Positions 1-43,669 of a stretch of DNA of 64,000 bases are shown one piece after another. This stretch comes from Mizuhopecten yessoensis (taxonomy: Eukaryota). The stretch is from positions 1,207,113 through 1,271,112 of the forward strand of contig NW_018407853.1 of NCBI RefSeq assembly GCF_002113885.1, read 5' to 3'. A program made the position numbers and the translations under genes. A model generated the notes under the pieces. It ran no database searches. It saw nothing but the letters and a program-made list of their open reading frames with translations, and was not told the origin of the DNA. The first letter of the stretch is position 1. Every line of letters begins with the position of its first letter.

Positions 1-2402
1 CTGTACGTAAATGATCATTACGGGGGTCGGGGCCAACCTGTTTCTGTCTCGTATATTCCGGAGGGCGGTGGTTCAGGGTCAGGACGAGTAAAATCTTACG
101 GGTATACTTTTCTGTGTATCCATGGAGTAGTTCAAGGAAGTCTCGGAGGTGCGACTGATTTTATCCAAGAAATATAGCAAGTTGGTTCCTAGGGTACCAG
201 AAGTGCAACGTCTTCGTCTTCATTCCAAATCCATTAAGATGCCGGAAATGTCAGAAGTACGGTCATCATGAAAAACGATGAAGGCAGAAGACCGTTTCCA
301 GTATTGTGGTTCGTGAGGGTCATCAGCACCAGACTGACTGTGCTATTGCCGACATGCATTGTGTGAATTGTGAGGGAAAGCATGCTGCTTCGTCTCGAGA
401 CTGTCCTGCCCAAAGTAGCGAAAGAGAGATATTTCAGCTTTGAAGTATACCCGGAATGTCTTCTTTCCTGAGGCTAGGAGGATAGTGAGAGTACAGCCAT
501 AGCTGCATCTCACTAAGTCCGGTCGCCGGTTGACAATGTCACGGTTTTGCCGTACCGATTCAAATTACTGTAAGCTTAAAATTTGGTGGGCAAAGGCTCG
601 GCTATCAATGAAAAACGACAAAAGAAGCAGCTGGAGAGAATATGAATCTAGAATATATCTTCAAAAACATTCTCCAGTTTAATGGGAAATGATTCTGAGG
701 CTAAATGGAAACAACAACATTAGCCTGTGTCATTAATAAAACCATTTTCTTTGAGGGCAAACGAAAACGGCTACAAAATGCACCTCTATCATCAACAAAA
801 AGCTTACAGTCACCTAAATCTTGCACTTAATGGCATTATAATCCCAGTTGTTAAGCAAAGCAACTTTCATTGACTATTATTTGAATCGAAACTCTCCTTT
901 ATTCCACATGTAAGGCATCCGAAAGATAAGTGTCTGAGTCGATAAACAATCTACAAGTCATCTCACATACTAATTGAGGTGCATACCGTTAAAGCCTGTT
1001 GCGACTTTATAGATCACTCTTCCGATAAAACCTCAGTTATCGTTCAACGGTATACGGTTCGGCAAGCAGTTCCTATGTGCAGATGTTGGATCCAATCCAT
1101 AACCAAGGGCTGCGTCTAACGCTTGTAGCTTTTTGAACGACGCCAGTGAAAAGCCTTTACGCAGAAGCGAATGAACCAGTTCTTTATGACTGAAGGAAAA
1201 GACTAGCTTCACAGTTTGCTGCTAAACTCAAATCAAAGCAAAGCAATTCTGCCTTTGACCAATTCGAAATACCTACACATCTTCGCGCAAAATCCAACAT
1301 TTGGTATCTGCATTTCCAAATTCCTGTAGGAGATCAGCATACATTTTAACAACATAGATTTATACAACGTACCGGATGCTCGACCATGGACTATGCAAAC
1401 ACCTGATGTTAATTTTACAATGCTTGAGCGGTCAAAATCTAGTGCACTGCCCGAAGAACACCAAGCCTCCATTCGTTAGTGCATTTCGAGGACCCCTTCT
1501 GATACATAGCTTTACACTGATGTTTCTAAAGATGACAAAATAGTAGCAGCAGCTTGCTGCTCTGTTCACTATTCCAATTCAATGCGCAGCACGTTCCATC
1601 GGTTTGGCCCTTGACTATATCGTTGAAAAAGCAATCGTCTATTCTGATTCTGTATTGGTCTTTTAAATTCTGCAGTTACATGATCCGATAACACTCTTAC
1701 ACAAAACCTCTCTATTCGCTAATCTTGTATCTCAAATAAATACAAAACAATTCTGCTATAGATTCCGAGCCACGTCGGAATAATAAGTTACGAAAATGCT
1801 GACAGTAGGTAAAATACATCTAACTCTCAGCAAGCCAATACCAAAATGCCACATACAGATTTCAATCATTATACAATCGGTCATTCAAAGGGAATGACAT
1901 CAACGATGGTCTCTCGAAACCACGAGCAAACTTTTTAAAGTGCAATCAAACCTTTAACCTTGTCTGCCCAGTCGGAGAAACCGCAGAGAGGAGGTCGTCC
2001 ATTGTCGGCTCCGCACTGGTCATACTCATCTCACTCGTGCTTATCTGCTGTATAGGGCAGATCAACCTACATGCCACGCACGTGACTCTCCATTAACAGT
2101 GGAGCACAATTTGACAAAATGTTCAGATTTTAGATATTTTCGTGATAAATACTTCAATGTCACGGACATGAAAACCCTTTTAACTTCCGTAGACTGTAAG
2201 GAATTATTCAACAATAAATACAAGACATCGGTCTGTTTTATAAAATTTCATTAACTTACATGACTCTTTTTACGGCATTTATACGTATCTCTTTCCATTT
2301 TAAATCTTTACACAATGATTTCAAATGAAATATTCTTGCCCTTAAAGACCATTGTTTTCAAAGTGCCATTAAAATCAAACAAACAACAACAAATAAACAA
2401 AC
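1..2402 (+). mobile_element. Decayed, internally deleted non-LTR retrotransposon, I/Nimb-like clade (ORF1 zinc knuckles + ORF2 RNase H/CCHC end)
   Basis: Manual translation gives IPNPLRCRKCQKYGH and HCVNCEGKHAASSRDCP (gag-like knuckles, ~220-410). RNase H-like remnants include YTDVSKD (~1510) and SHVGI (~1768). The C-terminal RREEVVHCRLRTGHTHLT...CHARDSPLTVEHNLTKC lies at ~1982-2122. An (AAAC)n-type tail lies at ~2370-2402. Many stops and frameshifts; EN and most of RT are missing. Confidence 0.85.
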
Positions 2403-2559
2403 ATATATCAATTGATAGCACCACAATATTATAACATATCATTTAACTACATGATAACAGCGATAAAATGTTATGAAATAAGAAAAAATAAAATAAAAAA
2501 GATAGTATTGTTGTTGTTTTTTATAAATCTGAGCATTTCCTGTATGGCCCTGTCCATTC

Positions 2560-3367
2560 TCGCCCTTGTATATGGATAAAGAAACCATGTGTAAATTTAT
2601 TCCGAATGGTGCTCTATTGCCATGGTAATACCTTTTAAAGTTATCTTTGAAACCTTCGTCGGTATTATTAGGTCGTTTGAAGCAGATATCGGTATATACA
2701 CAATCGTTCTTATTTCCCCATAAAACATGGTTCACCGGAATCTCCCAAAATCCCTTATGTTTTTGTTTTGGGCATATATTTGAAAATTTGCGACCGAAAT
2801 CCAATGTTAATGGCCACAAATAGCTAGCATTCACGTGAAGAAATGGTTTTGTTAGCGAAATGTCGTATGTGTTATCGAGGGTTTGGAGTGCGGTTACCTG
2901 GCCATCACCTGATGTAAATAAACCAGGACTCCTCTTAGTGACACCAACCAATTTAGCGATGTTGTCTCGTTGGTCACGTGCATCTTGCATAACCTTTGTG
3001 CCTGTATCAATGGCGGTAAGAGACACACTGTCAGCTCAAACCCGCATTCGTAGTACATCTTTGCTATGTCGTAGTGTGTTCTGATGTAATATGTATAACG
3101 TGGCTCCGATCGGACAGCCGTTCGGGTTGGCACGGCTACGTCTGAAAAGAACATTGTAGTGCTTAGAACCTTCAGGAGTCACTGCGTCATCGAATCCAAA
3201 ATACACCATTTGAGGAATGTCCCGTCGGTCCATGGGGTGTTTTAATGTACTACAGAATCCGTCCGGTAGGTGGCAGTTGATACATTGTTCACATGTCGAC
3301 TGATCAGTTACAAGATAAAAATGTGGAAACAAAACAGGGACCGCAGGATTTTTGTGAGCTCAATCAT
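2560..3367 (-). pseudogene. Frameshifted, 3'-truncated chitin deacetylase-like pseudogene
   Basis: Homologous pieces lie in three ORF frames: CINCHLPDGFCST..PQMVYFGFDDAV..NPNGCPIGATLY (3036-3332), YDIAKMYYECGFELTV (2894-3154) and QDARDQRDNIA..WPLTLDFG..GFWEIPVN..GNRAPFGINLH (2439-3026). A signal-peptide-like MIELTKILRSLFCFHIFIL starts at 3367 out of frame. The IVGW segment before RSP is deleted and there is no TM or tail. Confidence 0.88.
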
Positions 3368-7718: not shown

Positions 7719-8160
7719 TTTTACATGTCTCATTAGTATGTCACCCTTGCCTGTTGATATTTTACATGTCTCATTATTATGTCACTCTTGCCTGTTGATA
7801 TTTTACATGTCTCATTATTATGTCACCCTTACCTGTTGATATTTTACAATATCGCCTGGTAATGTCACACTCCCTTGGCAATATTCATGCTACCTCATTG
7901 TAATGTCACCCTCACGCGCATTTGGCGACATTTTACATTGACTAATTGTAATGTCACGCTCAAGTGGCGACATTTTACATTGCCTTATTGTAATGTCACG
8001 CTCAATTGGTAACATTTTACACTGTCTAATTGTGATGTCACGCTCAATTGGCGAGATTTTACATTGCCTTATTGGAATGTCATGCTCAATTGGTAAAATT
8101 TGACATTGCCTAATTAAAATGTCACACTAAATTGGTGACGTTTTACGTTGCCCTCTTGCC
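7719..8160. repeat. Degenerate 41-42-bp minisatellite downstream of the first dead CDA copy
   Basis: Units resemble ATTTTACATTGCCTTATTGTAATGTCACGCTCAATTGGCGAC, ~10 copies. A paralogous array lies at 21255-21790. Confidence 0.85.
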
Positions 8161-8531
8161 TTGTACCCTTGTACGGCAATATTTAACACTGCCTAATGAT
8201 TATAACTTTAACCTCAGCTCTATTTGTCTTTGTACTAATAGTAGGTAACAGCGATTTTACATCGTTTTCTCTCTGTCAAGCACATCATAAAGTTTAACAG
8301 CATCGGCATTTCAATAAAAAAGTAAAAACTTTAAAAAGTGACATTTTTTATTTATTTTATATAAGATCGATTAACAAAACTCTATATTCATCTGCATGGT
8401 TTGATAACTTAAAACGGCAATGGTTTAAAATGAAAAATAAAATGAAACTAAATCGTGAAACATGTATATATAGCATGGTAGTAAAACATTATTACGTTGG
8501 TACATTTTGTGCGATACTGATTCATTTACAA

Positions 8532-9740
8532 TCACATGTAGATATCTTCTTGCGTGAGGGGAATTTCCTCATATAACGGCCGAGAGTGGCGCTTAAATAG
8601 ACTGGGATAAACTCTCTCAACTACAATTGAAAGTGTATACAAGATAGCAACACTTGAAACTAGTATAAGAATATCTATCAAGGCCTTCTCCCCAAACGTC
8701 AGTTCATTAGAAGGTCCCGTCTTCGCTTTCTCTCGATCCTTTCCCATTACACCGGAAGTACACCAAGGTTCAAAAGCCCGGATGCCAGAGAGTTTGGTAG
8801 GACGTCTCATCCATTCAACAATTTGTTTAATATCAACGATATAAACACCATCGTTATTCAATATGTCCACAATAAACCTCTCCAAAGGTTCTTTATGTAG
8901 GCTAAGGAAATCAGTGGAATGGATGTTAATTCCAAACGGAGATCTATTGCCGTAGTAGTGACTTTTGAAATTGTCCATCAAATATTTGAAAATTTCGTTA
9001 GAATTCGATAATTTCTCCTGGCAACTATCAGCGTAGGTACACGGTTCCCCGTCAAGTATCATAGAGTTTACAGGAATCTCCCAAAAGCCATGATATTGAT
9101 CGTTGGGGCACCGAGAGGCACAGGTTGATTTGTAGGGCCACCCATAATCTAATGTAAACGGCCAGGCATTACTATCATTTATAGAACTTTTCGTATATGT
9201 CATAGAACTGTCGTAGCGGTACCTTGATTTTTGCAAAGCGAGGAACTGCATATCCCCCATCGCCATTAAAGAAGGGCTCCTCCAGCCTGCTATATCTCCT
9301 AGAGGTATTCCAACGTGTTCAGACAGCATGTTTTTATGTTCTATGACATCGTTCATGATGTTAAACCCCACATCGTATATATTATTTTCGGTGTCTGACA
9401 CGGCTAAGTCTAACCCGTGTTTGTAGTACTTTTTTGATATATCATGATCGGTGTTATTGTGTGTGATAAACAATGTGGCACTGATTGGACAGCCGTTCGG
9501 GTTGGTATGGCCTCGCATGAATAACAAATCGTAGGTTTCAGCAGAAAATGAATTCAAAACACCGTCAAATCCAAAATACACCATCTGTGGAATTTCGCTC
9601 CGGTTCATCGGATGTTTGAATGTACTGCAAAAGCAATCCGGAAGATGGCAGTTGATACATTGTTGACAGGTCTGTGCTTTCACTAGAGTAACTGTCAAAA
9701 CACTAGCACAAACTATGGAATATACCAACGTAAACCCCAT
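8532..9740 (-). CDS. Membrane-anchored chitin deacetylase-like protein (CE4), predicted catalytically inactive, copy A
   Basis: 402-aa single-exon ORF with signal peptide, CHLPDCFCS, PQMVYFGFDG, NPNGCPISATLF, GWRSP, WPFTLDYG, FWEIPVN, GNRSPFGINIH and VYIVDIKQIVEWMRRP (animal CDA-like pattern). TM segment at ~aa353-374; tail contains YEEI and DIYM. Motif 1 DD>DG and motif 2 HSxxH>SDxxN. Confidence 0.92.
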   Translation of the reverse strand: MGFTLVYSIVCASVLTVTLVKAQTCQQCINCHLPDCFCSTFKHPMNRSEIPQMVYFGFDGVLNSFSAETYDLLFMRGHTNPNGCPISATLFITHNNTDHDISKKYYKHGLDLAVSDTENNIYDVGFNIMNDVIEHKNMLSEHVGIPLGDIAGWRSPSLMAMGDMQFLALQKSRYRYDSSMTYTKSSINDSNAWPFTLDYGWPYKSTCASRCPNDQYHGFWEIPVNSMILDGEPCTYADSCQEKLSNSNEIFKYLMDNFKSHYYGNRSPFGINIHSTDFLSLHKEPLERFIVDILNNDGVYIVDIKQIVEWMRRPTKLSGIRAFEPWCTSGVMGKDREKAKTGPSNELTFGEKALIDILILVSSVAILYTLSIVVERVYPSLFKRHSRPLYEEIPLTQEDIYM

Positions 9741-9926
9741 GGTTAGTTCTGTTCCAGATATTTCATGGTGTAGAGTCAGCCTGTATACACTTTTATGATG
9801 GTAAGTAACAACGTGGAGACATCAAACAGCACATTGATTAGATAAAGTAGATTAAAGTCAAGTCCAGACGAACTATTCTCTGTGCGTGTCCTAACACATC
9901 TGGCGTAGTAGGTACATTTATATAGT

Positions 9927-10090
9927 ATTGCTATTTATAGTGTGCGATTCTTTACACTAGCCACACAGCAAGCCATACTCATTATACAAAAGGCTAATGA
10001 CAACCAGTAATACCAGTGTGATATGAAATAGGCCGTTTATTCACAAAACGACATAAAGTACAAACATGTATACACTACATTGCTATTTAT
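9927..10090. mobile_element. ~150-bp insertion flanked by 12-bp direct repeats (TSD-like)
   Basis: ATTGCTATTTAT occurs at 9927-9938 and 10079-10090. The paralogous site upstream of copy B (~23538-23549) has a single ATTGTTATGTAT and no insert. Confidence 0.65.
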
Positions 10091-10251
10091 TTGAGAATAT
10101 GCCTTAGGGAGTCATGAAATACAAGTCAGTGATCCCTTAAATATATTTCAGCGAATAAGGTAACATTGCCATTTTCCAAAACCATATATATATATTTTTA
10201 TTTGTAATGTTTTTTCCCCATTAAAAGTCATATAACATCAATATCAGTCAT

Positions 10252-11172
10252 GACATACATCAACGTGTACGTACTATGTAGTGTCAGACATACATCAACA
10301 TGTACGTACTATGTAGTGTCAGACATACATCAACATGTACGTACTATGTAGTGTCAGACATACATCAATGTGTATGTACTATGTAGTGTCAGACATACAT
10401 CAATGTGTATGTACTATGTAGTGTCAGACATACATCAATGTGTATGTACTATGTAGTGTCAGACATACATCAACATGTACGTACTATGTAGTGTCAGACA
10501 TACATCAGTGTGTATGTACTGTGTAGTGTCTGACATACATCAGTGTGTATGTACTATGTAGTGTCAGACAAACATCAATGTGTACGTACTATGTAGTGTC
10601 ATACATACATCAACGTGTACGTACTATGTAGTGTCAGACATACATCAATGTGTATGTACTATGTAGTGTCAGACAAACATCAGTGTGTATGTACTATGTA
10701 GTGTCAGACATACATTAATGTGTATGTACTATGTAGTGTCACACATACATCAATGTGTACGTACCATGTAGTGTCAGACATACATCAACGTGTATGTACT
10801 ATGTAGTGTCAGACATACATCAACGTGTGTGTACTATGTAGTGTCAGACATATATCAATGTGTGTGTTCTATGTAGTGGGAGATGAACATCAACGTGTAT
10901 GTACTATGTAGTGTCAGACATACATCAATGTGTATGTACTATGTAGTGTCAGACAAACATCAATGTGTATGTACTATGTAGTGTCAGACATACATCAATG
11001 TATATGTATTATGTAGTGTCAGACAAACATCAATGTGTATGTACTATGTAGTGTCAGACATACATCAATGTGTATGTACTATGTAGTGTCAGACATACAT
11101 CAACGTGTATGTACTATGTAGTGTCAGAAATACATCAACATGTACGTACTATGTAGTGGGAGATGTATATCA
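10252..11172. repeat. 35-bp minisatellite, ~26 copies
   Basis: Consensus GACATACATCAATGTGTATGTACTATGTAGTGTCA. Confidence 0.97.
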
Positions 11173-11282
11173 AGATTTCTCATTTAAAGATTATATTGGC
11201 TTTCAAACAATCGCTATATTGTTCTCAAATTTCCTTGTACATCTACATTAAGAGATCCACAATTGATGACTACATGTGAGTT

Positions 11283-13569
11283 ACTGACAGTACCTTACTT
11301 GGCTGATTTCACAGTACCTTACTTGGCTGATTTGACAGTACCTTACTTGGCTGATTTACAATACCTTACTTGGCTGATTTGACAGTACCTTACTTTGCTG
11401 ATTTGACAGTACCTTACTTGGCTGATTTGACAATACCTTACTTGGCTGATTTGACAGTACCTTACTTGACTGATTTAACAGTACCTTACTTGGCTGATTT
11501 GACAGTACCTTACTTGACTGATTTGACAGTACCTTACTTGGCTGATTTGACAAAACCTTACATGGCTAATTTGACAGTACCTTACTTGGCTGATTTGACA
11601 GTACCGTACTTGGCTGATTTGCCAGTACCTTACTTGGCTGTTTTGACAGTTTCCTACTTGGCTGATTTGACCGTACCTCACTTGGCTGTTTTGACAATTC
11701 CTTACTTGGCTGATGTGACAGTACCTTACTTCGCTGATTTGACAGTAACTTCCTTGGCTGATTTGACCATTCCTTACTTGACTAATTTGACAATACCTTA
11801 CATGGCTAATTTGACAGTACCTCTCTTGGCTGATTTGACTGTACCTTACTTGGCTGTTTTGACAATTCCTTACTTGACTAATTTGACAATACCTTCCTTG
11901 GCTGGTTTGACAATACCTTACTTGTCTGATTTGACAATTCCTTACTTGCCTGATTCGACAGTACCTTACTTTGCTGATTTGACAACACCTTACTTGGCTG
12001 ATATGACAGTTCCTTACTTGGATGATTTGACAATTTCTTACTGGCCTGATTTGACAATACCTTACTTTGCTGATTTGACAGTAACTTCCTTGGCTGATTT
12101 GACACTTCCTTACTTGACTGGTTTGACAATACCTTACTTGACTGATTTGACAATACCTTACTTTGCTGATTTGACAATACCTTCCTTGGCTGGTTTGACA
12201 GGACCTGTACTTGGCTGATTTGGCAGTCCCTTGCTTTGCTGATTTGACAGTCCCTTTCTTTGCTGATTTGGCAATCCCTTACTTGGCTGATATGACAGTT
12301 CCTTACTTGGCTGATATGACAGTACCTTACTGGGCTGATTTGACAGTTCCTTACTTGGCTGATCTGACAGTACCTTACTTGGGTGATTTGACAGTACCTG
12401 TACTTGGCTGATTTGCCAGGACCTGTACTTGGCTGATTTGACCATTCCTTACTTGACTAATTTGACAATACCTTCCTTGGCTGGTTTGACAATACCTTAC
12501 TTTGCTGATTTGACAGTGCCCTACTTGGCTGATTTGACCGTACCTCACTTGGCTGATATGACAGTCCCTTCCTTGGCTGATTTTACAATTCCTTACTTGG
12601 CTGATTTGACTGTACCTTACTTGGCTAATTTGACAGTACCTCTCTTGGCTGATTTGACCGTACCTCACTTGGCTGTTTTGACAATTCCTTACTTGACTAA
12701 TTTGACAATACCTTACTTTGCTGATTTGACAATGCCTTACTTGGCTGATGTGACAGTACCTTACTTAGCTGATATGACAGTACCTTACTTGTCTGATTTG
12801 ACAATTCCTTACTTGACTGATTTAACAGTACCTTACTTGGCTGATTTGACAGTACCTTACTTGGCTGATATGACAGTACCTTACTTGGCTGATTTTACAA
12901 TACCTTACTTGGCTGATTTGACAGTACCTCACTTGGCTGATTTGACAGGACCTGTACTTGGCTGATTTGACAATACCTTACTTGGCTGATTTGACAGTAC
13001 CTGCACTTGGCTGATTTGACAGTACCCTACTTGGCTGATTTGAAAGTACCTTACTTGGCTGATTTGACAGTACCTCACTTGGCTGATATGACAGTACCTT
13101 ACTTGGCTGATTTTACAATACCTTACTTGGCTGATTTGACAGTAGCCTACTTGGCTGATTTGACAGCACCTTACTTGGCTGATTTGACAATACCTTACTT
13201 GGCTGATTTGAAAGTACCCTACTTGGCTGATTTGACAGTACCCTACTTGGATGATTTGACAGTACCTTACTTGGCTGATTTGACAGTACCTTACTTGGCT
13301 GATATGACAGTACCTTACTTGGCTGATTTTACAATACCGTACTTGGCTGATTTGACAGTACCTTACTTGGCTGATTTGACAGTACCTGTACTTGGCTGAT
13401 TTGACAGTACCCTACTTGGCTGATTTGACAGTATCTTACTTGGCTGATTTGACAATACCTTACTTGGCTGATTTGACAGTACCCTACTTGGCTGATTTGA
13501 CAGTACCTTACTTGGCTGATTTGACAGTACCTTACTTGGCTGATTTGACAATATCTTACTTGGCTGATT
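11283..13569. repeat. 24-bp minisatellite, ~95 copies
   Basis: Consensus TTGACAGTACCTTACTTGGCTGAT. Occasional 25-bp CCTGTAC variants shift the frame. It is the source of the ADLTVPYL/SNQPSKVL/QISQVRYC ORFs. Confidence 0.97.
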
Positions 13570-23351: not shown

Positions 23352-26133
23352 GGTTAGTTCTGTTCCAGATATTTCATGGTGTACAGTCAGCCTGTATACA
23401 CTTTTATGATGGTAAGTAACAACGTGGAGACATCAAACAGCACATTGATTAGATAAAGTAGATTAAAGTCAAGTCCAGACGAACTATTCTCTGTGCGTGT
23501 CCTTACATATCTGAAGTAGTAGGTACAATTATATGGTATTGTTATGTATTTGCGAATATGCCTTAGGGAGTCATGGAATAAAAGCGACTTTCTTATCGTT
23601 ATGCGACATCTGTACGTAAGAAAGGTGGGGGTTTCGCCTATGCTAACACTGCCGTCTGCCAACATTTAGATTTCTTTTATAGCATCACGTCAGTGATTCC
23701 TTAAATATGTTCAGCGAATATGGTAACATTGCCTTTTTCCAAAACCATGGATACTTTGATAACATGAGACATATTCAGATAAAGGACAGATTATATGAAT
23801 CTAACGACAAAAAAACGAAAAGACTTAATTTTTATAGCTCACAAAACGACTATTAAAGATTGAGTAGCCGTTTACCTATAAGTAAATGATTTTATTCGAG
23901 GGTAGAATCTTTTAGCGATTTAGAAATGTAACTATGTGAAGATATACAAAATTCAATTAGTGATCAATTAATATTACCGTCTCCCAATGTTTGGATTACT
24001 CATCTAATGTTTACCAGTACTTATTCAATTTTGAAATTCAATTTGCTCCTCCCCTTCTGTTTCAACAACTGTAAGACCAGTTTGGATTTTCACCATTTTG
24101 GCGCCTAGCATCAGCCATGAGTCCTAGAAGGACAACAGCAGATGTATGGTGCATATAGTTTGTTGTTGCCCTACTGCATTAATTACTAAAGTATTTGAAA
24201 TGTACAATCACATGTGTATTCATCATCATCAATATCATACATGTACATTGTACTTCATTCCCAAATCTCCAACGGTTCTGTTCTACCTTCATATGGAACT
24301 CATTGTAAAATTGGCAGAGTGTATGAGAAAATAGGAAGGCAATTGGGTTAGGTGAGGCATCCACATCAGCCACAAAATATTTGACCTGACTTAATACCGT
24401 ACAATCCTCTCCATCCCCTCTCCGCCCCCGCCCTTATTAGAGTTAGATTAACTTATTTCAGCCCCTGTTGTAGAGGAGGGTTGTCAAGAGGGTAAAAAAG
24501 TGAGGTAAAAAAGAAGAAGAAATTACAGTATGAGAGTGTGAAAAAATGAGAGAGAAAAAATGAACCGGCGTTGATTTGTGAAGAAAGAAAATAGCGAGTG
24601 TTTGATGTATTGAGAGTTGTAGCTAAGGCATCCCATCCCGAAACAACCAACGAATAATGTACGCATCCCTGGGTTATTAAATGTATATACACACACAGAA
24701 AAAAGCAGCAAATAACTTAGCTCCTTCAAGATGACTATGTTTGCCAGAATTGGTCCCACATTATCTATTGAATAGAATAAATATTTCAAAGATGAATAAG
24801 TGCATGTCTTTGTCATTCATCTGTGCCTCTGGTAAGTTTGGAATAAAAAAAAAGTATCGGATTTTCATTTTTGAGTGTCAATTTCTCTGAGAAGTACAAA
24901 AAGCAATACGTTCTTAAAGAAAGTAGGCTATATTTATCAGAACAAGAATATTGATTAAATTTGGAAGCGGGAAAATATACCTTGTTAACAGAAAATAGGG
25001 TGCGATATGGTGAAGATGCATCTCCTGGAAGAGAAAGCTATTTAAATGTTGACACCTCAATTTAATTCTAGCAGCAGTTGTATAGGTTTCTACAGTACAA
25101 ATCATTGTATGGTTCATTTGTGTGCAAAATGAGAGGCCGAAAGCTAAGGGGTGATTCGTAGATGTATTATCCCAGGCGCTGTAACAGATATGAATTTAGG
25201 TAATAAATGCCTACATAAAGAATCTTTTTAAGGTACGTCATTACCGAAGTCTGCATTAATCACGAAAACATGCCTTTCCAGGTGTCGTTTCCCCTGGAAT
25301 CTAGGTATTTATCAGCTGTGACACAAGAACAAATTACAGTGTGCCTAAGTTCTCACGATCTTAACCCAGCAAATAGTGCGTGTTTGTATTGGTAATTACT
25401 TATTACGTTATTAACACTTATGTATGTATCGTTCGTAGCGAGGTACGGCATGTAGAAATGAAACACATTGCACGATTCTGGTTTCTGTGTATTGTATTCA
25501 TTCAAATCAATAGATCTATGTGATTTATTGGTTAGATGACACCGGTGATTCTTACTGCAGCAGTATATAAATACATATATCCATTAAGACTCTCTTATAA
25601 TATATTCAAACTGTAAACTTGATTACATCATTTGATATAGTGTGATGACGTGTCGTTGGCTTTGAAATACAGTGGCAAAGTCCACCAAGTATCGACCACC
25701 AAAGTTAGATATGAATATTGCATGCATATATGCACATTATGTGTCATGCTAATGTTTAACAAGTCCTGGTCCGCCAACAACGAGTACTCTAAATTGTATT
25801 GTTGTCAGATATTGAAATTCTATATATGAAAAAACATGGGTTAATCTTATTGTTTTGAAATTTAAACACAAATTATCTATTAAATTTTTAATTAAAAAGG
25901 AAAATTATTTGAAAATGTTCACATAAAAGTAGACTTAAGTGTAACTATACCAGTGGTGACGATCACTACCACCTAAGGACAAATAGTACTTTAGATGTGG
26001 TGTAGATAATAACTACCACCTTGGGACAAACAATGCATCGACGAATCGATACCACCTTAAGACAAATGTCACACTACAGTCAAGGTGTATACCGAAACAT
26101 AAAGATAATAACGCCAATGATATATAGTTTAAA

Positions 26134-27300
26134 ATGGAGATTGGGGTCGCAATCTTGTGTTCCCTAATATATTTCAACAAAATAACCATCGCAACTGATG
26201 TTTTGTGTCAACAAGGCGTCAACTGTCACCTACCGGACTGTTTCTGCAGTACATTTGAACATCCCATTGACCGAAATGACATCCCGCAAATGGTCTTTTT
26301 TGGCTTCGATGATGCAGTGAATGAACAAGTAGCTAAACACTATGACTTTATGTTCAGACGTGCGCGGACTAATCCTAACGGCTGTCCGATCGGTATCACG
26401 CTATATATTTCCCATAGAGGTACTGACTACAACACGGTAAAAAAATACTACAAACGTGGATTCGAACTGGCCGTGCATAGTATTAATCACGGTAAGATTG
26501 ATACCGACTCAAAATTGCTACAAGAGGCTAGAGATCAACGAACCAACATCGCTTCGCTAGCTGGTGTACCCCAGGATCACATCGTCGGTTGGAGAAGCCC
26601 AAGTTTACTGACAAGGGGGGATGCACAGTTTGACATCCTGACAGAACTTAATTACACGTATGACGTTTCGATGACGTATAGACGACTAAACATGCAGGAT
26701 CCCAATCCTTGGCCCTTTACCTTAGACTACGGATGGCCATTTACTCATACGTCGTGCACACCGAGCTGTCCTAGGAAGAGGCACAATGGATTTTGGGAAG
26801 TGCCTCTTAATGCAATGATTTTGAATAGATTCCCGTGTACTTATGTTGACGGCTGTTTCAGGATGCCGACCAGTGCCGACGATGCTTACAGATACGTCAT
26901 AGATAATTTCCAAAGCCATTACCGTGGTAACCGGGCTCCATTTGGAATCAGCATGCACGCCACCTGGTTTCTTCACCCATTCACTAGAGATGGTTTGGAT
27001 ATGGCAATACGCGACATGTTGTCACACGGGGATGTGTATATAGTAACTGTGCAACAAGTGTTGGAATGGATGAAAAACCCCGTCAAACTTTCGGATATTC
27101 ATAAGTTTGATGCTTGGAGTTGCAGCATTACAGATAGAATTGTGCATGGTACGTTATTGGCCGAATTGGTGGCTGGAGTTCTGGGTATTGTTCTATTAAT
27201 TGTTGGAGTTATCAGTGCAATTATCATCCGTACGCGAAAAGCATCAACCTATGCTCTCCTTAATGATTTGGAAACCGTAAACATAAACCCGGAAAAATGA
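26134..27300 (+). CDS. Membrane-anchored chitin deacetylase-like protein (CE4) with intact metal-binding triad
   Basis: 388-aa single-exon ORF with signal peptide, FGFDD (D59/D60), AVHSINH (H115/H119), GWRSP and GISMH. TM LLAELVAGVLGIVLLIVGVISAIII; tail RTRKASTYALL. AATAAA at 27516. Confidence 0.93.
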   Translation: MEIGVAILCSLIYFNKITIATDVLCQQGVNCHLPDCFCSTFEHPIDRNDIPQMVFFGFDDAVNEQVAKHYDFMFRRARTNPNGCPIGITLYISHRGTDYNTVKKYYKRGFELAVHSINHGKIDTDSKLLQEARDQRTNIASLAGVPQDHIVGWRSPSLLTRGDAQFDILTELNYTYDVSMTYRRLNMQDPNPWPFTLDYGWPFTHTSCTPSCPRKRHNGFWEVPLNAMILNRFPCTYVDGCFRMPTSADDAYRYVIDNFQSHYRGNRAPFGISMHATWFLHPFTRDGLDMAIRDMLSHGDVYIVTVQQVLEWMKNPVKLSDIHKFDAWSCSITDRIVHGTLLAELVAGVLGIVLLIVGVISAIIIRTRKASTYALLNDLETVNINPEK

Positions 27301-29274: not shown

Positions 29275-30430
29275 TCCAGGCTACGGCCAACTTAAACGGC
29301 CAACTTCTGGGACTGATAATCCATGTTAAGGCCAACTTCTGGGACTGATAGTCCTAGCTACGGCCAACTTCTGGGACTCAGTTCAGGCTACGGCCAACTT
29401 CTGGGACTGATAATACAGGTCACGGCCAACTTCTGGGACTCATAATCAAGGCTACGGCAAACTTCTGGGACTCAGTTCAGGTTACAGCCAACTTCTGGTA
29501 CTGATAGTCCAGGCTACGGCCAACTTCTGGAACTCATAGTCCAGAATACGGCCAACTTCTGGAACTCATAGCCTAGGCTACGGCGAACTTCTGGGACTCG
29601 TAGTCAAGGCTATGGCAAACTTCTGGGAATGATAATCCAGGCTTCGGCCAAAATCTGGGACTCAAAGTCCAGGCTACGGCCAACTTCTGGGACTAATAGT
29701 CCAGGCTACGGCCAACTTCTGCGACTTAAAGTCCAGACTTCGGCCAACTTCTGGGACTGATAATCCATGTTACGGCCAACTTCTGGGACTGATAGTCCTG
29801 GCTACGGCCAACTTCTGGGACTCAGTTCAGGCTACGGCCAACTTCTGGGACTGATAATACAGGTTACGGCCAACTTCTGGGACTCATAATCAAGGCTACG
29901 GCAAACTTCTGGGACTCAGTTCAGGTTACAGCCAACTTCTGGTACTGATAGTCCAGGCTACGGCCAACTTCTGGAACTCATAGTCCAGAATACGGCCAAC
30001 TTCTGGAACTCATAGCCTAGGCTACGGCGAACTTCTGGGACTCGTAGTCAAGGCTATGGCAAACTTCTGGGAATGATAATCCAGGCTTCGGCCAAAATCT
30101 GGGACTCAAAGTCCAGGCTACGGCCAACTTCTGGGACTAATAGTCCAGGCTACGGCCAACTTCTGCGACTTAAAGTCCAGACTTCGGCCAATTTCTGGGA
30201 CTGATAGTCCAGGTTACGGCCCACTTCTGGGACTCATAGTCCACCAACAGAATAAATCACCGTGTTGCGTTATATACAGACAACTTTTGCGACTCATAGT
30301 CCAGGCTACGGCCAACTGCTGTGACTTATAGTCTATGCTACGGCCAACTTCTAGGACTCACAGTCCAGGCTACGACCCACTTCTGGGACTCATAGTCCAC
30401 CAACAGAATAAATCACCGTGTTGCGTTATA
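29275..30430. repeat. 32-bp minisatellite (with 30-bp variants) containing a 444-bp higher-order duplication
   Basis: Consensus CCAGGCTACGGCCAACTTCTGGGACTCATAGT. The order of variant units at 29297-29740 repeats at 29741-30184. Confidence 0.95.
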
Positions 30431-31663
30431 TAGTCACTACAAATATGAAGAAAAGGAGGCACCTTCTAAAATATTTAAAAATGTAAATTGTAAATGCAGA
30501 AATTTATACAAACGTTTTTCTTTTCTATATGGCTATTTCGTCCATTAAGGACTCATCAGTATTACAAAGGTCAGAAATTGAAAATTCAATTTCTAAAGTG
30601 TTCAAAAACATATTTTTATAGGCGAACATTAAAAGGAGAAGTACTTATAATACCCGTTACAACTTTACAACTTGTAATTTTTTCTGTTATATTTGTTTAA
30701 TGATACAATGAACTTATATTTTGAAGTACTAGTAAAGAATATTTAGGAATTGTGCTGCTTTCTTTATTTCTCTTTATATCAATTCATTTGCATTATTTAA
30801 AGGAAGAAATGACAAAATATACAAAATATTAAAAGAAAATGTGTTCCTCTTTCTAAAACATCCACAAAAATGGGGGGTCGGTCATATCATTTGTGTTACT
30901 TTTTACCTTTTTGGTGGTCAAAAATCAAAAGTGTTTCAGTTACACTAAATATGTAAATTTTTTTATCAATAATGTATAATGGCGACACAATGACAACTCG
31001 AGTGATCAATCTAGTGTCAAAAAAGGTGATTTTTTTGCCTTTTTTGAAGCCCAAGAAATACACATCAATACACATTTTCAAAATGGCCGCCGAATAGGTA
31101 ATTTTTTCAAATTCTTGTAAAAAAAGTTCTACAAACAACAGACATTTAGTTTTTATTACGTTTTCTTGAACGTGATTAAAACCTCAGAAGAGTACATCCT
31201 TAAGGATTAACTTAAATATATTTTTTATGTTATGAAGATATAACAAAAAAAAACCCGGAGTGTACTCTAAATAAACCGCGAAACTAACGAGACGCTAGCA
31301 TTCTTCCAATTCACCCATTGCTACAAAATCAATATAATATCTGACATATGAATTAAGAATTATACTGTAACTAACGCAAGTTCTGTCTTACTTGCTACTT
31401 GACGTCCCTCAATAAACAATATAATGTCCAGTGTTCACATTTATGTCCGACTGGGGATGTTAACTTTGAATAAAAAAATAATAATAGAGGTCTCTAAAAC
31501 AGCGGCGTAGTTGCATTGACTACTTAAAATTATTTCGCGTTGCCCGTTTTTGGTATCACATTATCTTACATTATTCTTTTTCTGTAATTTATTTCTGGAA
31601 ATTGTTTCCTACAAAATCTCCCGAACCGACGCCGTTAATTAAAAACTCATCTTACTCACACTC

Positions 31664-33471: not shown

Positions 33472-33534
33472 TTTCGCGCCAAAATAACTATATATCCGAG
33501 TAGTTCCGAACAGTAGTCAACAAAAGTCACGTGA
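33472..33534 (+). promoter_or_regulatory. Putative promoter of the + strand gene: overlapping double E2F site and E-box
   Basis: TTTCGCGCCAAA (33472-33483) and GTCACGTGA (33526-33534) lie just upstream of a CpG-containing segment that ends in a strong donor CG|GTGAGT at 33761/33762. Confidence 0.45.
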
Positions 33535-33549
33535 TGAAGCGTACAGTTG

Positions 33550-33761
33550 TCAAGTTAGTTACACTTCCCCACATAGAAAGGTGTCCAAGCAAACAGCTGT
33601 GTGTCGGGGATAGTACCCGAGGTTTAGAGGATTTTGAAGTGAACAGGATTACACAATTAAATTGTTACAGGGATATGTACAGTTTTTGATGTCCAGACAG
33701 GATTTACACTGCTGAGTGCCAGCCGTGCCGACGGGCACTTGTTCCAGACCATGTGTTTACG
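33550..33761 (+). other. Putative non-coding first exon of the + strand multi-exon gene (start approximate)
   Basis: Donor GTGAGT at 33762 with promoter-like motifs upstream. The exon at 43592 begins with an acceptor and 78 nt of UTR, so an upstream exon is needed. Confidence 0.45.
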
Positions 33762-34929
33762 GTGAGTCGAGATCAATCAGTCACATATGCAGCTGATCGT
33801 GACTAATTATTGTTTATCGTACAGGTGTGGGTCAGTTTAGGAACGTCGACCCTCTTAACGATATATAATGAGTATTGCCATATCGATAACTGTATAATTT
33901 GGTTCCATTAAAATACCGCATGTACAATTATATCTTTTCAAATAGTTAAATATATATATACAATACATAATATATCTACTTATTTGGTATATTACAGTAC
34001 AGAGACACCCATGTGCTGTAAAAAGGCTTATTAGTGGATCGATGATTTCAGAAAAGGATATATATAAAGTTCTAAATTGCACAGTCCGAGTTCAACCCGC
34101 ATTAATTAATAACTTCATTTCCCCCATCTAACCCCAAGAGTGTAAAGTATTGGTGTTAGAGGTTTACACAGTGAGTAACTTCTGACAGGCGCAGTCAGCA
34201 AAATCATATCTGATAGAAAAAAGGCTGACCAGTAGCCTCTTATGTTATAAGAGTATAGGGGCAGTACTGCATGTGTTCAACATAGTGTATTTATATCCCT
34301 ATGTATATGTTATGGCTTAGAGTTACATGAACGATAAACTTTCCTTATTGCAGTATATTCATTTTAGATCTCTAGCCTAGACACCCGACTTAGACATTTT
34401 GACAGATAGATGTGTGGTATTGGCAGATTATAAGTCTATCTGTCAAATGCCTAATTTTGGTATCCGGGCCAGAGGAAACTGGGACTATAATGTTCATCTT
34501 TCATTTTGATACTGTGCATGTCTTATATATATAGCATCATGTTAATGAAGTACAGCGTACATATGATTGCCAGTGTAATAAATATATATGAAAATATATA
34601 TATCAGAGGTTTGATCCCTGCAGCTTTTGTTGTTCAAGTTTGTTTACTGTTTTTCTGTTTTCAAATATACTGTACTCACCAATGCCGAACAACTACAATA
34701 TTTGGTAAAATTCATTTATCAATTGTGAGAATGTGATTCATGTGGAACACTTTTATAGAAAAAATATTTTAAAACATATATTTCATGAAAGTGACAATGT
34801 TAATAGTACAGAATTTTGATGATATTTTGACTTATGCAATTGATAAGTTTCTGTAATCAAATTAAAGGCTTTAATACTTCTGAGTCCATTGCATAGGGCT
34901 AGGGGATGTGCCATGAGACCTTTTTACTT

Positions 34930-35820: not shown

Positions 35821-37479
35821 CCTCTACAGTTTATAAGGTAACATGTCCCTGTGCTCCAGGGAAGTATACAATTATGTATACAGTGGCAGTAGAAATTTGA
35901 AATTTGAAATTATGATGCAAATGACTATATGGAATATGACATGCGTCGCAAAGCATTGTTATGTTACATGATGTCATAATTAGAAGATTGACCAATGGCA
36001 TAAAGTCCATGGTGTTATCCACTAGTAGGTAACCAAAAGTGTATACCAACTTCCAGTAGGTTAATCAAATGAGTCAGGAGTAAGGAAACAAATAGTGATT
36101 GTGGGAGAAAAAAGATGATAAAGTGAATGTAATCGGCAGTTAATGGCATGTTACTGCAGTATATGGATATTGGTTAACAATTTACAGTGGATAAACAAAT
36201 TTTGAATTTGAAGGTAATAAGGTGTTTTTATTTTCACTTGAAAGGCTGTTTCATTAAAAGTACTTAAGATTTATGATGCATTTAAAGTAGGCCTGCTATT
36301 GAATAATGAATTCTAGATCCCCTGCATGTCGCACAGGTGGTGTGAAGTGGAGTGTGTTTGTATCAGAAGTATATGCCAAGCGCTGGCCAGCAGACGTTCA
36401 AAACCGATATCCTCTGATTAAAACCGTTCTGTCGACAGTCTAACAATAGACAATATCAGAGGGTGTATGGTGGATAATGAATGCAGCTCATTGTTTGGGT
36501 CAAGGTATATACGCTAAGCAGACCTGGAGTAGGTTTAGGCTGTGGGTGGATAGTAACCTGATATACCGTAAATGGTAGAATCAATCCAATGTTAAGAAAT
36601 GAGTTTAACTATATATACATCTAAGCACAATATGTATATTATATATATGAAGTTGACTATCATGGTACATACACCATTTAATGTATACATAATTATTTAA
36701 TAACTCAAGTTTATGTACCTTTTTATGTTTGATCCATATAGAAGAGGATAATTAAAGAGACAGAGGGCCCAGATGGGGGGGGGGGGGGGGGGGGNGTTGG
36801 GGTATTGCTAGTAGATTGGAGAGAAGGAGAAAAAAGGGACTGAGGAAGAGGAGGGACAGAGGAGGAAGAGGGAAAGAGCTGGGGATCTCGGCGGCTTGAA
36901 GAAAGAATATAGAGAATTGGTTGATGAAGAGGTATCATAGGTTTTATAGAGCTTCCTGTTGCATTAATTCAGTCATTTTCATTGATTGACAAGAGCTGAT
37001 TGCTGGACAAATAATGCTAGCACTGTGCCTGGGAGATTGGGCCTGGTGAAAACCATGAAGGGGTCCCGAGCAGGTGTATGGCACAAGGGTAGCCTGAAGA
37101 GGGAAGATAACAGGAGGGGAAGTCTCAAGAGGGTGGATGGCAAATGCAAGAGGGTGGTCTCAAAAGGGTGAATGAAAGGAGGGAGGAGTCAATGAAGTAT
37201 ATTAAGGAGTGATCGATAAAAGTTGAGTCAAGAGAATGTTTGTGAATGCGTGAGGTAAGGGGTTATAGCTATAGGGAAGAGAGTGACAAGATTGAATTGG
37301 ATGAAATGAGGGGACATCTTTAGTGAGTAGGAGTGACTGGCAGGAATATAGGGTGTATTGTGACAGTTGGTTGATGGCAGCAAGATGGAATTGGTTATAG
37401 TCAGAGAAGGGGGACTTCCAGGGAGTGGGCATGGCTAAAGAGAGGGAAAAGAGTCTAGAAAAGACACGACAGATTATAT

Positions 37480-38030: not shown

Positions 38031-39224
38031 TTTTAGCATCATATTGACAGCTGAGGTTATGAAGGATGTACCATGTGTGTGTAATGATTGTAATATTGCA
38101 TGTACTAGAGTTTGCCTCCTTGTGATAGAGTGAATCTGATGCCAACTTTAGAGGACTACCTCACTGAACTCAAAGCCTTTCTGAGGGTGATTGATGGGGT
38201 GTCTGCATGATGGTAGGAAAAAGGGTCTGAAGAGGATGGGTAACAGAAGGGAGTTTTGTTAAGGGTCTAGATGGCTAGATACTTATTTGCTTTTGGTTTG
38301 ATGTTATAAAGCCTGGGTGCATGGTTTGGTAGCTTATTGACAAAAGTGGTCTACAGATTGTGGGTATATCAGTTTTGAACTTGCCTGATTAAAGAATAGA
38401 GAGCTTTGCTGGTGTGATTGACTAGGCCAGGTACTGATGTACATTTGTAGGTTAAGGTTTACAGGGTAGGGTTGTCCATTGATTCAGATTGTGTGCTGCT
38501 AGCTGACTGATTTTTTATATGGAGGTTCATAGTGGGTCTAACATTGATATAGTGAAAATGAAAATAAGTATGTTTAATATTATGAAGGTTTTCATCTCTT
38601 TTGGACTTAACATATTGTGAGGTTTCAGTTTTTAGGTAAGATATGTGAAGCCTTGCCACTGATTCAGCATGACACTTAAATTGATGTTCATTTGGGGGTC
38701 TAACAGTAAAATGTAGCCAAAACAAACTGAAAACAAATCTGATTTTTGTGAGTTTCACCTTTTATTTTGACTTTACTTATTTACTCAAAAATATAAAGCA
38801 CAAATTATTTATTGGTAAGATATACTGTACCTGTATAATAAATAGATGAGGGTTTGTTGAGTTTGACACCATTTTTGGTTTAGATTAAATAGTAGAAGTC
38901 AAATAAAGGATATTGCTACTGGGGAAGGTTTGTGAGGGTGGTTGATTAAAATATACTCATTCATCATTTGATTACAATTTGTAAGACAGTCTTACTAGAT
39001 AATAAAACCAATGGTAGACATGCACTGCGGAACTGATTCAAAAACGGTGTGAAGCCTTCTTGTCGAACATAGCATTAGTAAGTGCATGTATATGAAGCCA
39101 AAGAGTATGCTGTTGATTCCCCATCTTCTTTCCATGCAATACTGTTTACTTATCTAATGTAAATACTAGAAAACTTAGTGGTGTTCCCATTGAATATTTA
39201 CATACAAATGTATATACTAGTATT

Positions 39225-42200
39225 TCACTTATGTTTCAGAATATAACAATACACTCACTTGTGTTGCAGAATATACCAAAACACTCACTTATGTTGCAGA
39301 ATATACCAATACACTCACTTGTGTTGTAGTATATACTAATACACTCACTTGTGTTGTAGTATATACCAATACACTCACTTGTGTTTGGGAATATACCAAT
39401 ACACTCACTTGTGTTTGGGAATATACCAATACACTCACTTGTGGTGTAGAATATACCAATACACTCACTCATGTTGCAGATTATACCAATATACCAATAT
39501 ACCAATACACTCTCTTGTGTTGCAGAATATAACAATACACTCACTTGTGTTGCAGAATATAACAATACACTCACTTGTGTTGCACAATATAACAATACAC
39601 TCACTTGTGTTGTATAATATACCAATACAATCACTTGTGTTGCAGAATATAACAATACACTCACTTGTGTTGTATAATATACCAATACAATCACTTGTGT
39701 TGTAGAATATACCAAAACACTCACTTATGTTGCAGAATATACCAATACACTCACGTGTGTTGCAGAATATACCAATACACGAATATAACAATACACTCAC
39801 TTGTGTTGTAGAATATATCAATACACTCACTTGTGTTGCAGAATATCCCAATACACTCACTTATGTTGTAGAGTATACGAATCTACCAATACACTCACTT
39901 GTGTTGTAGAATAAACCAATACACTCACTTATGTTGCAGCATATACCAATACACTCACTTGTGTTTGGGAATATACCAATACACTCACTTGTGGTGTAGA
40001 ATATACCAATACACTCACTCATGTTGCAGATTATACCAATATACCAATATACCAATACGCTCACTTGTGTTGCAGAATATACCAACTCACTTGTGTTGCA
40101 TAATATACCAATACACTCACTTGTGTTGTAGAATATACCAATATACCAATACACTCACTTATGTTGTAGAGTATACCAATCTACCAATACACTCACTTGT
40201 GTTGTAGAATATACCAATATACCAATACCCTCACTTGTGTTGTAGAATATATCAATACACTCACTTGTGTTGCAGAATATACCAATACACTCACTTGTGT
40301 TGTAGAATATACCAATACACTCACTTATGTTGCAGATTATACCAATATACCAATATACCAATACACTCACTTGTGTTGTAGAATATATCAATACACTCAC
40401 TTGTGTTGCAGAATATACCAATACACTCACTTGTGTTTGGGAATATACCAATACACTCACTTGTGTTGCAGAATATACAAATACACTCACTTGTGTTGCA
40501 GAATATACCAATCCACTCACTTGTGTTGCAGAATATACACATACACTCATTTGTGTTGCAGAATATACCAATACACTCTCTTGTGTTGCAGAATATACCA
40601 GTACACTCACTTGTGTTGCAGAATATACCAATACACTCACTTGTGTTGTAGAATATACCAATATACCAATACACTCACTTGTGTTGCAGAATATACACAT
40701 ACACTCATTTGTGTTGCAGAATATACCAATACACTCACTTGTGTTGCAGAATATATCAATTAACTCACTTGTGTTGCAGAATATACAAATACACTCACTT
40801 GGGTTGCAGAATATAACAATACACTCACTTGAGTTGCAGAATATACCAGTACACTCACTTGTGTTGCAGAATATACCAATCCACTCACTTGTGTTGCAGA
40901 ATATACACATACACTCATTTGAGTTGCAGAATATACCAATACACTCACTTGTGGGGGGGAATATACCAATACACTCACTTGTGTTGCAGAATATACAAAT
41001 ACACTCACTTGTGTTGCAGAATATAACAATACACTCACTTGAGTTGCAGAATATACCAATACACTCACTTGTGTTGCAGAATATATCAATTCACTCACTT
41101 GTGTTGCAGAATATACAAATACACTCACTTGTGTTGCAGAATATACCAATACACTCACTTGTGTTGCAGAATATACCAATACACTCATTAGTGTTGCAGA
41201 ATATACCAATACACTCACTTGTGTTGCAGAATATACTAATACACTCACTTGTGTTGTAGACTATACCAATATACCAATACACTCACTTTTGTTGTGGAAT
41301 ATATCAATACACTCACATGTGTTGAAGAATATACCAATACACTCACTTATGTTGCAGAATATACCAATATACCAATACACTCACTTATGTTGTAGAATAT
41401 ACCAATATACCAATACACTCACTTGTGTTGTAGAATATACCAATACACTCACTTATGTTGCAGAATATACCAATATACCAATATACCAATACACTCACTT
41501 GTGTTGTGGAATATATCAATACACTCACATGTGTTGCAGAATATACCAATACACTCACTTGTGTTGCAGAATATACCAATACGCTCACTTGTGTTGTAGA
41601 ATATACCAATATACCAATACACTCACTTGTGTTGCAGAATATACAAATACACTCACTTGTGTTGCAGAATATGCCAATACACTCACTTGTATTGCAGAAT
41701 ATACCAATACACTCACTTATGTTGTAGAATATACCAATATACCAATATACTCACTTGTGTTGTAGAATATACCAATATACCAATACACTCACTTGTGTTG
41801 CAGAATATACCAATAAACTTCCTCGTGTTGTAGAATATACCAATACACTCACTTATGTTGTAGAATATACCAATATACCAATACACTCACTTATGTCGTA
41901 GAATATACCAGTATACCAATACACTCACTTGTGTTGTAGAATATACCAATATACCAATACACTCACTTGTGTTGCAGAATATACCAATACACTCACTTGT
42001 GTTGTAGTATATACCAATACACTCACTTGTGTTGTAGTATATACCAATACACTCACTTGTGTTGTAGTATATACCAATACACTCACTTGTGTTGTAGTAT
42101 ATACCAATACACTCACTTGTGTTGTAGTATATACCAATACACTCACTTGTGTTGTAGTATATACCAATACACTCACTTGTGTTGTAGTATATACCAATAC

Positions 42201-42480
42201 ACTCACTTGTGTTGTAGTATATACCAATACACTCACTTGTGTTGTAGTATATACCAATACACTCACTTGTGTTGTAGTATATACCAATACACTCACTTGT
42301 GTTGTAGTATATACCAATACACTCACTTGTGTTGTAGTATATACCAATACACTCACTTGTGTTGTAGTATATACCAATACACTCACTTGTGTTGTAGTAT
42401 ATACCAATACACTCACTTGTGTTGTAGTATATACCAATACACTCACTTGTGTTGTAGTATATACCAATACACTATCTTGT
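39225..42480. repeat. 30-bp minisatellite (~100 copies) in putative intron 1
   Basis: Consensus ATATACCAATACACTCACTTGTGTTGCAGA, with 38/46-bp variants from an extra ATACCAAT. The last ~16 units are identical. Confidence 0.97.
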
Positions 42481-43669
42481 GCTTAGTGCTCATGAAAAAT
42501 ATCAGTATTCAGTCATACTCTTCCTAATAAAATATATCAAAGTTTACAAACAGTAACAATTCTTTGACTGTTAGTATGTATATTATAACAAAGACCTGTG
42601 AAAATGTTTGACTGTTTAAGATGCTTAAAACTGGAGTTAAATCACAGATAATAATCTGAAGTTCTTTTCTATACAAGGAATGACCTTTCCCTCTCATACG
42701 TTGGTCTGCTCATTAGTATAATTTACATGTATTTGGGATTAATAGATTACTACAAAAAAATGTTCAGTTCGTTGGAGAATTAAGTGTAATTAAATACCAT
42801 ATAAATTGAATCTGAACTTTAACTTCAATCACCTGTATTGAGGTATTGACTTTCGATATGTTTCTATTTATTTTACAATATAAACACCTGTTGACTTATT
42901 TATAAACTTACATAATAACATGAGTCGTAATTCCGAAGAGTCACACTAAATGTATATGGTAAGTAAATTTAACATTTCCCATCTTTCATTTTCATTTATT
43001 TTATATTTAAATATTTTTGTGCCTAATTAGTATCTAATATTGTTAACTAGAACAAATTGTGTCCAAACCAATTTGCACACTACTGTATTTGCCAGGAAAT
43101 TAATTCACATAAATCGCAGTGTACATATTTTACAGTATGCACAAATATTTTTTTTCTTCAATTCTTTAATTAGTGATGAATGCACATATGTTTAACTAAA
43201 ATGTATGTGACCATAAATACTGTATGAAACATTGGTAATCAGCAGGAAATATAACAGATAGACCGAAACCATCCTATTTTTCTCAGTTTAGACCAAATGG
43301 ATACAAAGTAATATATAATCATCACTATTAATTTTTATATATTTTTTACATTAATTCATGAGGAAAGTTAAGCATGGAAGTTTGCGTCTCACAAATAGTG
43401 GCATTCATTTAAATCAAAATATTTAACTTTCAGATCCTTTGAAATACATCATCTAAATCACAATGGTGAAAATAAGATTTCACAAAAATTGAGTTATTTA
43501 CAGTACGGTGGTGGGGCATCAACAATAGTTGATTAACACATGTACAATGTCAGGTATTAAAAAATATAATTTGATTTCTGTGATTTGACAGGTTGATGTG
43601 ACAAAACTTGATGGATAAGTGAATACGCTGCGTTGTACATTAGTCGTGCATAGTCAGGTGTGCATCATA

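Follow-up and report, generated by a model that had tools for sequence, protein, structure and literature searches.

When a chitin deacetylase (CDA) gene has lost the residues that bind zinc and lies beside an intact relative, it can be asked whether the metal-less gene is a relic or a protein in use, and whether the two genes form a working pair. Such an arrangement occurs in the window, by which we mean the whole 64,000-nt stretch analyzed here of the scallop Mizuhopecten yessoensis (contig NW_018407853.1, positions 1,207,113 to 1,271,112). The window encodes two copies of a metal-less CDA-like gene of 402 aa on the reverse strand, copy A (8532..9740) and copy B (22143..23351), and a neighboring CDA gene of 388 aa on the forward strand, head-to-head with copy B, with D60, H115, and H119 intact (26134..27300). 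Each of the three is a single unbroken coding exon, and genes were analyzed throughout as single-exon open reading frames (ORFs), with no joined spliced model. Chitin underlies the shell matrix, the gut lining, and part of the diet of molluscs, yet their CDAs have hardly been studied, and databases annotate the scallop proteins as “chitin deacetylase 1/8-like” or “uncharacterized.” The metal-less gene encodes a functional, retained, and constrained type-I membrane protein, its topology being read from sequence and from a predicted helix.

Active site, fold and membrane anchor

Alignment with the insect enzymes BmCDA8 and BmCDA1 placed D59-D60 and H115-S-I-N-H119 in the neighbor, and D59-G60 and S115-D-T-x-N119 in both reverse-strand copies, as the preliminary description of the locus had reported. 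The neighbor’s D59-D60, H115, and H119 map to the catalytic base and zinc triad positions defined in the BmCDA work (PMC6463723), and its acid/base and triad set is complete (D59, D60, H115, H119, R154, D239, and H275), with Ser at the motif-3 aromatic position that is Phe or Tyr in 60 of 70 active paralogs. Copies A and B lack every member of the Asp-His-His triad (G60, S115, and N119) and keep the catalytic base D59, R154 (in the R154-S-P motif), motif-4 D238, motif-5 H274, and an intact frame, in agreement with the earlier account. Loss of the three zinc ligands should abolish CE4 chemistry. Inactive CE4 members lack the His pair (PMC5855634). Judged from these residues, the metal-less protein is very probably incapable of zinc-dependent de-N-acetylation.

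The fold appears to have outlived the metal site. Sequence matches to BmCDA8 and BmCDA1 (5Z34 and 5ZNS) were found for the neighbor (E 4e-54) and for copy A (E 8e-38; phmmer, 5Z34). In the Pfam check proposed in the preliminary description, Polysacc_deac_1 did not match copies A and B, and the intact neighbor reached 17.3 bits against a cut-off of 23.1; since even the intact gene scores below the cut-off, the model is insensitive for this CDA clade. The structural check was favorable, in that an AlphaFold2 (AF2) model of the metal-less ectodomain reached a pLDDT of 93.4 and matched 5ZNS in Foldseek (E 5e-26, TM-score 0.89), with TM-scores of 0.87–0.89 to BmCDA1 and BmCDA8; it was built from a deeper alignment in place of an earlier model from 13 sequences (pLDDT 68). 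The predicted domain is a NodB (beta/alpha)7 barrel with insect-type insertions, which places the metal-less protein in the CE4/NodB superfamily. Like BmCDA8, BmCDA1, and BmCDA6, it has an extended CE4 barrel, a Cys-rich N-terminus, and C-terminal loops, without a separate chitin-binding domain. The insect CDAs of groups V and I carry the zinc triad and are secreted into the matrix, whereas the metal-less scallop protein has a transmembrane (TM) helix and a cytoplasmic tail and lacks both the triad and the groove Trp.

Hydropathy points to an N-terminal hydrophobic stretch in each of the three window proteins and to a TM helix near the C-terminus, with basic residues behind it (Kyte-Doolittle 19-mer values of 2.2–3.0), and an AF2 helix at residues 349–377 agrees with a type-I topology of signal peptide, single C-terminal TM segment, and basic stop-transfer residues; both lines support the membrane anchoring claimed previously. 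The TM helix lies at about residues 355–374 in copy A, which ends in the tail YEEIPL, and at 347–365 in the neighbor, which has the tail YALL. In the metal-less gene this helix is as conserved as the ectodomain, with 13 of 20 positions invariant versus 8 of 21 for the neighbor in the same species. An extra Cys28 is specific to the metal-less lineage, and its tail, YE(E/A)IPL, is conserved. The YxxL/I motif also occurs in most long-tailed CDA paralogs, active ones included, and in these tails is probably a sorting signal. Roughly 14–16 CDA-like genes are present in this genome (988-Mb assembly), most of them triad-intact, including about ten intact genes besides the neighbor, several TM-anchored; since about half of the paralogs carry a C-terminal TM helix, anchoring is a trait of the scallop CDA expansion and not special to this cluster. 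The closest homologs are from scallops, and several of the paralogs match annotated M. yessoensis proteins exactly.

Retention and transcription of the metal-less gene

The preliminary description had proposed that the metal-less copies are retained, and had made this depend on counterparts in related species and on expression; both were found. A single metal-less ortholog (67–73% identical) is present in each of Pecten maximus, Ylistrum balloti, and Argopecten irradians, with the same D-G and S-D-x-x-N lesions, TM helix, and tail. Each ortholog lies head-to-head with the ortholog of the neighbor and upstream of a 4HBT thioesterase gene, which here lies about 1–2 kb to the left of the window. 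Between orthologs the ratio of nonsynonymous to synonymous substitution (dN/dS) was 0.07–0.14 for the metal-less gene and 0.04–0.13 for the neighbor (Nei-Gojobori, with dS near-saturated). A more distant transcript, P0006 (D-G, S..R, TM), is sister to the metal-less clade (support 100/99); P0006 and a further transcript, P0012, come from Logan runs SRR27895283/4. In the tree, the stem of the metal-less lineage is long (0.20+0.38) and its crown branches are short; such a long stem with stasis after it fits neofunctionalization. A word-based profile search, limited to 0.55–1.75x length, returned no metal-less orthologs beyond the five known, and an atlas search returned generic CDA clusters only.

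Where the other three scallops have one metal-less copy, M. yessoensis has two. Copies A and B share a block of about 2 kb (7912..9938, 92% identical to 21521–23549) that includes a flanking 42-bp tandem repeat, and their coding sequences differ at 44 of 1209 nt (dS 0.056; 93% amino acid identity); they are therefore one gene, recently duplicated. This duplication, Cys28, and the Ser at the neighbor’s motif-3 aromatic are additions to the preliminary description, as are a groove Trp replacement (W278 to D277), a pseudogene, and an inverted fragment, which are treated below.

Raw RNA reads of run X22 cover the coding regions of the metal-less gene and the neighbor, with none over most of the central intergenic stretch. 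Both alleles, A and B, are represented among these reads: at the variant sites listed, 38 of 38 agree with copy A, and B-type reads are present. Run X1, whose reads also extend over intergenic DNA, was left out of the expression evidence. Runs X22 and X24, which belong to one study, differ about 50-fold in reads on the cluster (446 versus 8), which suggests strong tissue- or condition-specific expression. An apparent chimeric transcript of the metal-less gene and the neighbor (joint from 23198 to 26261, 27 reads, opposite strands) was rejected, as both of its loose ends match a paralog on another contig (L005) exactly.

Possible roles of the protein and the question of pairing

We give roughly an even chance to the reading that the metal-less protein is tethered to the membrane and, rather than catalyzing, binds a ligand or serves as an accessory protein, its remodeled ligand site taking a glycan (possibly chitosan-like) or a protein. 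The gene would have arisen by duplication within an expansion of intronless type-I membrane CE4 genes in the scallop lineage, then lost all three zinc ligands, passed through a burst of change, and been conserved since. Its product would place an insect-type CDA barrel at the cell surface or in the endosomal lumen, where the remodeled groove, with its metal site empty and its Trp and claw aromatics changed to Asp/Glu, would hold a glycan or a partner protein. The glycan would plausibly be partly deacetylated chitin or chitosan, or oligomers produced by intact CDAs; the conserved TM helix, Cys28, and the YxxI tail would serve oligomerization and endocytic trafficking. Any naming of ligand, partner, or tissue is speculative. 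This reading is supported by the identical loss of the triad in four genera while D59, R154, D238, and H274 were kept, and has a precedent in BmCDA6, an inactive protein that still binds chitin as the active paralogs do (PMC7953033).

Several observations weigh against this reading. The groove residue W278, shared by 69 of 70 active domains and by 11 of 11 metal-less domains examined from fused CDAs, is Asp (D277) in the metal-less gene of four scallops; Y99 is His, and F233 and F242, equivalents of the BmCDA8 “claw” (PMC6463723), are E/Q/K and Q/E, respectively. The aromatic substrate groove expected of a chitin lectin is thus not retained, which weakens a plain chitin-lectin reading and argues against stacking-type chitin binding. 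The “acidic groove” is a local feature suggested by these residues: the isoelectric point (pI) of the whole ectodomain is no more acidic than that of the paralogs, and the replacement residues are not fixed significantly more often than the background (8/12 versus 60/145, p=0.13). Copy B has Asn in place of the tail Tyr, and EcCDA is a dead CE4 protein without a demonstrated glycan role.

The preliminary description had gone further and treated active enzyme and dead copies as one system. As stated, this was not supported: in Pecten, Ylistrum, and Argopecten the neighbor’s orthologs are D59-G60 with HxxxH, and the intact triad was seen only in this genome and in outgroup P0012. Because P0012 has the full triad, the metal Asp was lost once, on the branch to the three other genera. 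An intact gene plus a dead one is not the conserved state across scallops, and an obligate pair is doubtful given this loss, the runs with copy A only, and the many other intact CDAs. MurNAc deacetylases such as BsPdaA work without the motif-1 metal Asp (PMC5855634), and by analogy the D-G/His-His orthologs may still be active. BaPda likewise lacks the motif-1 Asp, and BsPdaA, active with its His pair, is a model for these neighbors only, as the metal-less gene has lost both His too (PMC5855634). The three orthologs (L025:7659-8834, L026:7418-8581, and L027:8001-9173) keep both His under purifying selection and so form a natural His-His-only animal CE4. Together the orthologous genes offer a natural series (full triad, His-His only, no ligands) bearing on a CE4 role without catalysis.

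That the metal-less protein is instead a dedicated subunit of the neighbor, encoded by a co-regulated gene and presenting chitin to the enzyme or activating it within a complex, is in our view rather unlikely. The head-to-head pair and the downstream thioesterase gene are kept in four genera, the two lineages are sisters (83/57, weak) with congruent species trees, both genes are transcribed in X22, fused active and metal-less CDA domains are widespread in bivalves and gastropods, and BmCDA1 requires accessory proteins (PMC6463723). However, the neighbor is without its metal Asp in three of the four genera; copy A occurs without the neighbor in X6, a contig, and in X24, with 8 reads, which counts for little because absence cannot be proved from contigs or at low depth; and, given the weakly supported sisterhood, a tandem origin is enough to account for the adjacency. 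There is hardly any conservation in the intergenic DNA: the divergent region (23352..26133) measures 2.8 kb here and 0.8–1.4 kb in the other scallops, and a cross-scallop comparison for a conserved bidirectional promoter found only short patches, near each start. The fused metal-less domains, moreover, are a separate lineage (approximately unbiased [AU] test, p=0.003). Somewhat less probable is a surviving hydrolase that acts on another substrate, either independently of metal or through a rearranged metal site (D59, D116, H274, and D277). D59, its Arg, the motif-4 Asp, and the motif-5 His are invariant, whereas most fused metal-less domains have lost the motif-5 His, and H99, H135, D277, and D116 (from S116) are newly invariant; these residues may nevertheless be structural, and D59, R154, and D239 persist in the fused metal-less domains also. 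PuuE allantoinase (3CL6) catalyzes without metal on the NodB fold and has retained motifs 4 and 5, with the motif-4 Asp and the motif-5 His (PMC10967932), but it is a soluble bacterial enzyme with other changes in motifs 1–3, one motif-2 His, and another catalytic set, at 15% identity in the structural match. Compared in sequence, the metal-less gene keeps the motif 4/5 residues of PuuE and differs in the motif 1/2 pattern.

With little confidence, a signaling or pattern-recognition receptor can be proposed, acting through the TM helix (Asp356 and Ser363) and a tail resembling an Src-SH2 ligand. YEEI/YEAI and a terminal Tyr occur in four genera, and the TM helix outdoes the neighbor’s in conservation, but the wide occurrence of YxxL/I among paralogs makes a sorting signal simpler, and the motif is absent in copy B and in outgroup P0006. 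Least credible of all, and very unlikely, is that the gene is a decaying, functionless duplicate or that copies A and B are alleles split by assembly. The nearby pseudogene and inverted fragment indicate local turnover, dN/dS between A and B is 0.58 (on few changes), and other scallops have a single copy. Decay is nonetheless ruled out for the lineage by expression, by frames that are intact in five species, and by a dN/dS of about 0.1 over saturated dS; the sequence that carries A and B is free of gaps, and their flanks differ. Copy B, taken alone, may be dispensable or may not be a separate locus.

The locus has no bearing yet on a long-standing open question, and it is well known that glycan enzymes give rise to dead paralogs. 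GH18 chi-lectins and IDGFs show a chitin-active enzyme family yielding conserved dead paralogs as binders or regulators; they differ from the metal-less CE4 gene in fold and family, are secreted, and retain an aromatic groove. BA0150 (4M1B) and Encephalitozoon ECU11_0510/EcCDA (2VYO) have the NodB fold without metal His, as here, and are presumed or shown to be inactive (PMC5855634, PMC10967932); they are bacterial and microsporidian, of independent origin, and EcCDA is also without the catalytic Asp and Arg that the scallop gene keeps. The metal-less gene is a probable CE4 pseudoenzyme, of which dead CE4 proteins and inactive chitin-binding insect CDAs were already known examples, and the evidence at hand does not make the locus a new class of system. 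Full-text literature searches of incomplete coverage found no paper on molluscan CDAs that are metal-less or anchored in the membrane.

Other metal-less deacetylases and the surrounding sequence

A wider pattern in molluscs is suggested by the locus as well. In about 30 clusters (50% identity) the proteins have two domains, and a long low-complexity linker joins an intact CDA at the N-terminus to a metal-less D-G CDA at the C-terminus; they come from Sinanodonta, Potamilus, Tegillarca, Saccostrea, Haliotis, Babylonia, Pomacea, Elysia, and this genome (L011/L012, L019/L020, and L004/L017 here; P0070–P0097). The metal-less domains form an ancient clade without motif-2 His. A derivation of the scallop gene from them was rejected, as the two are separate clades (100/99 each) and the AU test dismissed a common origin; since the fused domains form their own clade, the CE4 metal site was lost independently several times, among them in the TM paralogs with altered motif 2 described next. 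No description of such fusions was found in the literature searched, and they are possibly more interesting than the window cluster. As a long shot, molluscs may have repeatedly evolved a partnership of intact and metal-less CE4 proteins, fused in bivalves and gastropods and encoded as separate membrane genes in scallops, in which the metal-less partner would act at the cell surface as receptor of chitosan-like oligomers, the deacetylated product, and either internalize them or signal via the YE(E/A)I tail; if true, this would be an animal chitosan receptor built from a deacetylase.

Degenerate TM-anchored CDAs of a second kind, with the first motif-2 His changed to Lys or Leu, occur in four scallop species, in a different tandem cluster that also contains intact paralogs (L010 at G000:C4568:362482-363483, with S-D in motif 1; P0258, P0259, P0266, and P0033). 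The chiton Liolophura sinensis has single-domain metal-less CDA-like proteins (P0114 and P0115) with a hydrophobic C-terminus, apparently of independent origin.

Within the window, a CDA pseudogene (~2442–3335, reverse strand) keeps the DD of motif 1, is frameshifted around motif 2, where HSxxH is lost, and has neither signal peptide nor TM region; no counterpart was seen in the orthologous loci of the other scallops. Its start has the extra Cys of the metal-less lineage despite the motif 1 DD, and its closest overall DNA match is L013 (73%); it is possibly chimeric. An inverted 200-bp fragment of the metal-less gene (19934..20134, forward strand) is 96% identical to both copies. The assembly has one N at window position 36795 and N gaps in L013 and L018. 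Window positions 1–2300 hold decayed fragments resembling long interspersed nuclear elements (seen by eye as short translated pieces), with the thioesterase gene on one side and the pseudogene on the other. Minisatellite arrays at 10247–13569, 29296–30432, and 39200–42530 (35-, 24-, and 32-bp units, among others) give rise to spurious long ORFs. On the neighbor’s side, 33472–33850 and 36334–36566 are 68–75% conserved in Ylistrum and/or Argopecten, show no evident reading frame, and may be conserved non-coding elements or untranslated-region exons.

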